A DNA stretch of 63,205 nt, the filler included, from Octopus bimaculoides (Eukaryota), in the NCBI RefSeq assembly GCF_001194135.2. It is 7 parts of 7 records of this genome, joined end to end, with 100 filler letters (N's around TTAATTAATTAA, not from the genome) between each part and the next. Parts side by side here need not be neighbours in the genome. Positions count along the whole stretch, not along the records: positions 16,533 to 47,768 come from NC_068982.1; 6 more parts are not named here. One strand, given 5' to 3'. Shown piece by piece: positions 44,093-45,795 of the stretch. The notes beneath the pieces are model-generated. The model saw nothing but the letters and a program-made list of their open reading frames with translations, was not told the DNA's origin and ran no database searches. The position numbers were made by a program, and so were the translations under genes. Each line of letters begins with the position of its first letter. Within the stretch, counting starts at the first letter, position 1.

Positions 44093-44633
44093 GACACACA
44101 TACATGCACACACACACACACACACACACCATTCCATCCTCTTATATCAATCGTTTTTACACACATACATACATACATACATACATACACATACATACAT
44201 ACATACATACATATATGCATACATGTATATATGTATACGTATTTATATAGATATACACATATGTAAATACGCACGTGCGCGCGTACATACACACGCACAT
44301 GTAAATGTATTCTTAAACAAGGACATTTTTAATTAAATTTATAATTTATGACCCAGGAGGAAGAGGAGGAAGAGCAGCACCCACGACCTTTGCAAAGCGT
44401 CCCTGCGATAGGAGGTAGAAATGGTAACTTGTGGCTTTTAGCTGTTGTAATTGTTATTGTTGCTGTCCTCCTCCTCCTTAGATAGTTATCGTTGTCGCTG
44501 TTGCTTCGCCCCTGCTTGATGAGCCATGATCAAATTAGGCTCTAGCCTTGATCATACTGTGGTCTCTGTCTGTCTCTGTCTGTCTGTCTGTCTCTCTCTC
44601 TTCAGATATGGTGTATGTAGGACTACATTTCTC

Positions 44634-44841
44634 GGTAATTTTTCAGATTAACACCCGCACGATTTTCACTAGGGTGTTAGTGTTGGGGTTTTAGGGTCAG
44701 GGTTAGGGTTTTAGGGTTAGGATTAGTGTTAGGGTTAGGGTTAGGGTTAGGTTTAGGGTTTAGGGTTAGGGTTAGGGTTAAGGGTTAGTATTAGAGTTAG
44801 GGTTAGAATTAGTGTTAGGGTTACGGTTTTAGGGTTACGGT

Positions 44842-44876
<35 letters not shown>

Positions 44877-44947
44877 TGTTAGGGTTAGGTTTAGGGTTTT
44901 AGGGTTAGGGTTAGGTAATCGTGCGGGTGTTCATCTGAAAAATTACC
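44634..44947. mobile_element. MITE (Merlin-like termini) filled with degenerate (TTAGGG)n
   Basis: 31-bp TIRs at 44634-44664 and 44917-44947 (30/31 match). Perfect 8-bp TSD CATTTCTC at 44626-33 and 44948-55. Confidence 0.92.
44668..44916 (+). repeat. Interstitial telomere-like array (TTAGGG, TTTAGGG, TTAGTG, TTACGG variants)
   Basis: Direct reading. Confidence 0.95.
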
Positions 44948-45795
44948 CATTTCTCAATATACCCTTCTTCTCTTGATCCTCCAGGGTGTGATTTGAAAGA
45001 GATTTGAGCACTATTTTTAGTAGGCCCAGTGAACGTTTCCTAGAAGCAACGCCTCGATACATTGAGTTATCTTCAAAGCTGAAACCTAGTCCTAATACAT
45101 GCAATCCAAATACCTGATGGGGAACGGTGGTGGTGGTAGTGGTAGTAGTAAAAGTAGGGGCATTATTGTGGGCGGGGAGTGGTGTTGGTTGTGAAATTTC
45201 ATTGGTGAGTGATGGTGGTGTATTGTTGTTAGGGAGTTATGGGACGTGTGGTTGCGATGATAACGATGATGATGATGATGACAGTGATTGGGTCATTGCT
45301 TTCATGGTGTTAATTTGGAGTAAATGTGTGATGCAGTTTCAATACCTGATTAAGCCATTTTGTTTCAATTGTATCCCGTATTTGAGATTTTCCCCTCCTT
45401 AGTCGATAAGGGCATGATTGACCCATAAAAAAACGCTACGAAGACAGGGTTCGAATTATAATGATCCGATAAAAGTTATAGGACATTTTCATAGTGTTGA
45501 AAGCGATGATGATGGTGTTGATGAATACAGTAGTGGTGGTGGTGGTGGTGGTGGTGTTTGGGTTGTTGCTAGGTAGTTATGACAGTGGTAATGGTGATGT
45601 TGATGGTAGTGGTGGTTAGTGGTTGTGGTAGGAGGTGTCCCAACGGCATTTGTAATGATTGTAGTTGGGTTGTTGTTGCTTTGTTAATGTTGTTCTTATT
45701 GTTTTGCTCCAATTCAGACTTGGTGGCGTTAAACCTATGATCAAAGGTGTCCCAAACTTGACCACACCGTCTTTTATCAAATATAGTGTATCTAA

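Follow-up and report, generated by a model that had tools for sequence, protein, structure and literature searches.

A degenerate telomere-like array between terminal inverted repeats in Octopus bimaculoides: a candidate cargo of a cut-and-paste transposon

Chromosome fusion, or the action of telomerase at repaired breaks, is the usual explanation for interstitial telomeric sequences (ITSs), and a route by way of mobile elements has been proposed in reviews as no more than a possibility (PMC6410037). A locus on NC_068982.1 of Octopus bimaculoides bears on that proposal. An array of units resembling TTAGGG, which is the octopus telomere motif according to Adachi et al. (2014) as cited in PMC6160780, lies there exactly between terminal inverted repeats (TIRs), and these are flanked in turn by a target-site duplication (TSD). 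The locus raises the question of whether the array travelled to this site as the cargo of a transposon or was acquired after a transposon had landed. In this study, we analysed a window of 63,205 nucleotides (the whole stretch, filler included), of which positions 16,533 to 47,768, a piece of about 31 kb, come from NC_068982.1. We put the probability that the telomere-like array was already within the element at insertion at roughly 0.6.

Structure of the element and its insertion site

The whole element is 314 bp long and consists, together with the duplicated target site, of the following parts (positions count along the window):

44626–44633, unstranded: left copy of the TSD, CATTTCTC, abutting the left TIR
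44634–44664, plus strand: left TIR, 31 nt, with a 5'-GG start, GGTAATTTTTCAGATTAACACCCGCACGATT
44665–44916, G-rich strand on plus: interior, 252 nt of degenerate telomere-like units
44917–44947, minus strand: right TIR, 31 nt, AATCGTGCGGGTGTTCATCTGAAAAATTACC, with one mismatch to the left arm
44948–44955, unstranded: right copy of the TSD, CATTTCTC

An inverted-repeat search showed the two TIR arms to be complementary at 30 of 31 positions (97%), with 252 nt between them. Their sole mismatch falls at position 16 (T in the left arm, G in the right), and the complementarity ends at position 31. Even when up to three mismatches were allowed, the TIR was found in the window at these two sites only, and its chance expectation, taken from 100 dinucleotide-preserving shuffles, was 0. 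Both ends of the element read GGTAATTTTT and have GGTAA as their first bases. The 8-mer CATTTCTC occurs in the window at the two TSD sites and nowhere else. An identical pair of 8-mers somewhere in the window is expected 1.47 times and is hence unremarkable alone; for the two fixed sites directly adjoining the TIRs, agreement at 8/8 positions has, given this base composition, a probability of about 2.5e-5. Because the adjacent bases differ on either side, the TSD is exactly 8 bp long and not 9.

The coding content of the element is slight. Four open reading frames touch it, two of which (41 and 48 aa) enter from the left flank, while a third of 53 aa terminates in the right TIR and a fourth of 20 aa lies within the array. 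Its length of 314 bp, together with just those short frames, identifies the element as non-autonomous and of the MITE type: TIRs are present at both ends, a TSD flanks them, and the unit is small and non-coding. When folded as single-stranded DNA, the element forms a single stem, made by the two arms, at −27.9 kcal/mol (z = −9.9). It lies inside a gap-free stretch of 6.8 kb (40959–47768), the nearest assembly gap being at 40941–40958.

Integration by a DDE-type cut-and-paste transposase leaves a TIR-plus-TSD structure of this kind as its signature. In addition, the near-perfect state of the TIRs and TSD is consistent with a fairly recent insertion. An initial annotation of this DNA had described a tract bracketed by 31-bp inverted repeats matching at 30 of 31 positions, a perfect 8-bp duplication directly outside both of them, a MITE and a recent event; our analysis bears out the first two in every detail, agrees with the third in finding a MITE-sized TIR-plus-TSD insertion with no coding capacity, and is compatible with the fourth.

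Superfamily, possible partners and neighbouring repeats

Judging from the terminal sequences and the length of the duplication, Merlin appears to be the best-fitting superfamily. All described Merlin families have TIRs of 24–462 bp, a 5'-GG start and TSDs of 8 or 9 bp (PMC8101967), and all three features are found here (5'-GG ends, an 8-bp TSD and a 31-nt TIR, which is within that range), so that the octopus element resembles the non-autonomous elements of Merlin, a group related to IS1016/IS1595. It is unlike them in that its interior offers no sequence for comparison and that neither a DDE_Tnp_IS1595 transposase nor an autonomous partner with these TIRs was seen in the piece. To our knowledge, no MITE of the Merlin superfamily has been described as carrying a telomeric array. 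The initial annotation had named Merlin as well; this assignment is a putative one, based on three structural features, and its defining link would be an autonomous element with these TIRs that encodes a DDE_Tnp_IS1595 transposase.

A cargo-carrying MITE of some other superfamily with 8-bp TSDs (Mutator-like, Zisupton, Novosib, P or an atypical hAT) is a real contender, if somewhat short of even odds. TSD length and two terminal bases classify an element weakly, and several superfamilies share the geometry: Zisupton and Novosib make 8-bp TSDs, the TSDs of Mutator-like and P elements are about 8 bp long, and the P element of Drosophila combines a 31-nt TIR with an 8-bp TSD. The ends separate some of these candidates from the octopus element, since hAT ends normally begin with YARNG (the CAG/TAG type) and P ends with CATG, and a GGTAA start mismatches both. 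On this terminal motif hAT was rejected, although its TSD length fits; the initial annotation had likewise noted that hAT ends usually begin with CAG or TAG. Zisupton and Novosib gain some weight from being reported in cephalopods beside Merlin, all three being found among molluscs almost exclusively in cephalopods (PMC10294476), a distribution that counts for Merlin as well. Against the whole group stands the observation that the element displays every one of the Merlin features given in PMC8101967.

A suitable transposase was not found in the piece, and the interior retains no internal transposon sequence that would link the element to an autonomous family. The sole transposase remnant is a decayed, frameshifted pogo/Tigger-like gene on the minus strand at 18589–19748, spread over three overlapping frames, in which HTH_Tnp_Tc5 covers 19200–19748 and the two halves of DDE_1 cover 18991–19302 and 18589–18864. 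A search of the protein collection with its reading frame gave neither an exact record nor a homologue at E ≤ 1e-5. The pogo/Tigger family makes TA duplications and this remnant has no end sequence in common with the element, and it was therefore rejected as the mobilising partner.

Relatives of the element were sought at several levels. Within the 31-kb piece, no second copy of the TIR or of the element was found, and when the flanks and the reconstructed empty site were compared with the piece by BLAST, only microsatellite matches were returned and no paralogous empty site. Exact scans for the TIR with two patterns, one of which avoided the two CpG sites, gave 0 matches in JGI metagenome contigs, viral contigs and GTDB genome contigs, as expected of collections with almost no animal DNA. 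Peptides from the open frames of the TIR yielded no candidate in a protein collection that, in a control with 10 of the window's own ORFs (the TIR-spanning one included), held 0 of the 10, so that the negatives from these collections have no bearing on copy number. Among plasmids, a search for bacterial IS1595-type relatives of the end sequence produced one 20-nt chance match (E = 2). That the element belongs to a cephalopod MITE family with many copies and recent activity, with a Merlin transposase as its probable driver and a body made up wholly of telomere-like array, and would thus be the mobile vector for ITSs put forward in the initial annotation, is in our estimate rather unlikely.

The surroundings of the element are themselves repetitive. 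The piece has about 35% G+C, is rich in microsatellites and is interrupted by N gaps, which lie at 20187–20286, 24204–24967, 27448–27927, 30128–30539 and 31039–31198, with three more of 10–18 nt, and which often adjoin microsatellites. A 226-nt palindrome at 30108–30559 was discarded as an artefact of N paired with N. A SINE-like repeat of about 230 bp, presumably the abundant SINE of octopus genomes, occurs in copies 75–85% alike at 25343–25538, 32807–33030 and 35013–35227, and three partial copies stand head-to-tail at 26377–26886, spaced 191–194 nt apart and inverted relative to the copy at 32807. At 29497–29955 there is a foldback or MITE-like structure, whose 153-nt arms (29516–29668 and 29803–29955) show 92% complementarity and are separated by 134 nt; a 28-nt tandem repeat (29488–29549) duplicates the outer end of its left arm, and inspection by eye gave no clear target-site duplication around it. 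A 24-bp minisatellite, GTGGAAGGATTAGTGATCGCCTTC, is present in four copies with 95% identity at 21649–21745 and adjoins a GGT/GAT-rich low-complexity stretch (21050–21450), and similar GGT/GAT-rich stretches lie near the element at 43992–44050 and 45127–45610. In addition, two direct repeats of 143 nt (39413–39555 and 45993–46135), 85% identical and 6.6 kb apart, flank the neighbourhood of the element and probably belong to another dispersed repeat family. Rfam and tRNA scans found no RNA genes in the piece.

History of the telomere-like array

The interior is almost entirely telomere-like. TRF reported a period-6 TTAGGG array at 44691–44915 with 35.8 copies, 79% matches and 8% indels, and the piece contains no other telomere-like tract. 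All 24 of 24 near-perfect dimer matches are on the plus strand, so that the array has one orientation. Cutting the interior at G-to-T boundaries gave 43 segments, among which were 13 TTAGGG, 5 TTTAGGG and 4 TTTTAGGG, along with the variants TTAGTG (5), TTACGG (2) and TCAGGG, TTGGGG and TTAAGGG (1 each). Only 5 nt past the left arm (TTCAC) and 1 nt before the right arm (T) are not repeat, and the interior has no other unique sequence. Its edit distance from perfect (TTAGGG)n is 35 over 252 nt (13.9%), that of the TRF core is 25 over 226 nt, and the longest perfect run is 3 units. With its 26 GGG runs and 3 non-overlapping G4 motifs, the interior might, judging from sequence, plausibly form G-quadruplexes and bind telomere proteins.

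Above the level of single units, the array contains a duplicated block of degenerate sequence:

44674–44776, plus strand: duplicated degenerate block, first copy
44812–44915, plus strand: duplicated degenerate block, second copy

The two blocks, each of about 104 nt, have about 88% identity and variant units in common, and they are offset by 138 nt; in the autocorrelation of the interior, the 138-nt peak equals the 6-nt peak in strength. The longest exact repeat inside the interior is 23 nt. The initial annotation had described a telomere-like interior with recurring higher-order blocks. The former is upheld, at 252 nt made up of nearly nothing but degenerate TTAGGG-type units in one orientation; the latter are real and inexact, the 32-mer that had been put forward recurring only with a one-base indel.

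Two observations favour the reading that the array arrived as cargo, namely that it is far more decayed than the TIRs and TSD and that it carries the duplication, at about 138 bp, of an already degenerate block. First, over 78 site-lineages the TIRs and TSD have changed once (1.3%), against 35 edits over 252 nt in the interior (Fisher p = 0.0007; p = 0.014 with the 25 TRF-core edits over 252 nt). This contrast is to be read with the caution that slippage and G-to-T damage raise the mutation rate of G-rich tandem arrays above that of unique DNA (the TTAGTG unit is seen five times in the array), and that intrastrand repair could keep the TIR arms alike. The TSD alone has 0 changes in 16 site-lineages and, even if it had diverged as much as the array, would have about a 10% chance of showing none. 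Second, as the two blocks are about 88% identical and have variant units in common, the array appears to have degenerated, then been duplicated and then diverged again by about 12%. Such a layered history is hard to squeeze into a short time after insertion, which favours an array that was already old at integration. The claim of the initial annotation that the tract was delivered as one unit is thus favoured through the age contrast, and its status as cargo at the moment of insertion is a deduction from a single copy.

The main rival, that the array was acquired in situ, seems unlikely to us, and it has a neat explanation for one feature. A tiny palindromic MITE, consisting of the two 31-nt TIRs and a spacer of a few bases, would have inserted, with the TSD as the result; at some later time its hairpin would have broken at the tip, and the repair would have brought in telomeric repeats, whether by telomerase or by copying of a degenerate telomeric template. 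As a variant, a short seed would have grown by slippage, and the array would never have been mobile. The array fills the space between the arms exactly, apart from 5 nt next to the left arm and 1 nt next to the right, and this exact fill is what in-situ acquisition explains neatly. The hairpin loop is a plausible fragile point, since the arms make a strong single-stranded stem, and vertebrates provide documented cases in which telomeric repeats were inserted at double-strand breaks (PMC2246262, PMC8537989). However, an array younger than the insertion should not be more decayed than the TIRs and TSD, yet it is about 10 times more so. Its history of duplication followed by divergence also speaks against this origin, which needs either a degenerate template or a much raised mutation rate in the array.

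An origin without any transposon, by break repair that captured palindromic filler and telomeric DNA (the fill-in of a staggered break imitating a TSD) or by misassembly of telomere-like reads, is very improbable: repair insertions can carry short duplications and the host assembly is of draft quality with many gaps, but a symmetric, non-telomeric 31-nt inverted repeat with exact 8-bp duplications abutting it is a specific signature of TIR transposition, and the element is surrounded by 6.8 kb of gap-free sequence. Two conventional sources of ITSs do not match the structure either, in line with the initial annotation, which had argued against both fusion and break repair. A relic of head-to-head fusion, (TTAGGG)n-(CCCTAA)n, is excluded by the single orientation of the array, whose dimers are all on the plus strand. 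A short ITS formed by telomerase at a repaired break does not describe a tract that is bracketed by TIRs and TSD and is 13.9% off the perfect repeat, and the array is unlike plain telomerase healing.

If the array did arrive as cargo, the founding event at this site would be the integration of a 314-bp non-autonomous cut-and-paste transposon of the MITE type. A transposase, presumably supplied in trans, would have recognised both 31-nt TIRs and excised the unit; integration at staggered cuts 8 bp apart, followed by repair, would have given the duplication of CATTTCTC. Such an element would have no body of its own, with the telomere-like array alone between its TIRs, and the array, by then already degenerate and with its internal duplication in place, would therefore have come to this site as passive cargo. 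The founder of the element may, speculatively, have arisen when the two transposon ends were joined across a 3' end that had been extended by telomerase or had switched template; abortive repair of a gap may have given the occasion, or breakage of a palindromic mini-element at its tip.

Related systems and significance

Several known systems share part of this architecture. First, mollusc MITEs with internal tandem repeats have been described, among them DTC84 of Donax trunculus and the pearl-related elements (PMC3879986). The octopus element is like them in being a short non-coding unit with a central tandem array of ordered variants, its flanks acting as a 'cassette' (PMC3879986). Their core repeats are much longer than 6 bases and are accompanied by a microsatellite, their inverted repeats are short and their putative target duplication is AA (PMC3879986), whereas the present array is built from the 6-bp telomere motif, with TIRs of 31 nt and a TSD of 8 bp. 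Repeat-carrying elements of the oyster that resemble DTC84 and pearl have been assigned to Helentrons (PMC7492417).

Second, short ITSs at double-strand breaks, including TERC-ITSs, are likewise TTAGGG tracts of single orientation at internal sites (PMC2246262, PMC8537989). These break-repair ITSs have no terminal inverted repeats, whereas the octopus tract is exactly bracketed by TIRs and TSD. Young telomerase-mediated ITSs consist of near-perfect repeats inserted straight into unique sequence (PMC2246262, PMC8537989); unlike them, the present tract is strongly degenerate though its insertion looks young. A systematic study of TERC-ITSs saw no sign of their spread by transposons (PMC8537989), and reviews of ITSs list transposition by mobile elements as just a possibility (PMC6410037).

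Third, the TBE elements of Oxytricha are another case in which a DNA transposon is physically tied to telomere-type repeats (bioRxiv 10.1101/2025.03.17.643836). TBEs are autonomous Tc1/mariner elements with G4T4 repeats inside their TIRs and an ANT target duplication (bioRxiv 10.1101/2025.03.17.643836); the octopus element, by contrast, is non-coding, has its repeats as the interior and is flanked by an 8-bp TSD. A search of full-text literature, the coverage of which is incomplete and does not extend to Repbase and Dfam, returned no prior description of a MITE with a telomeric interior.

No cleaner molecular signature could be left by a transposon route to ITSs than a telomere-like array placed exactly inside TIRs and a TSD, and the one copy examined here suggests that chromosome-end repeats can be brought to an internal site by a cut-and-paste transposon that carries them. 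If the locus represents a single event, it is a neat and minor curiosity. If it belongs to a family, a DNA transposon would be seeding ITSs genome-wide, which would give direct molecular proof of a dispersal route that has so far only been proposed in reviews, and each copy would be a potential former of G-quadruplexes and a potential binding site for telomere proteins. Such a transposon would scatter fragile G-rich sequence able to bind those proteins, and its insertions would provide a natural system for studying their effects on replication, recombination and chromatin.
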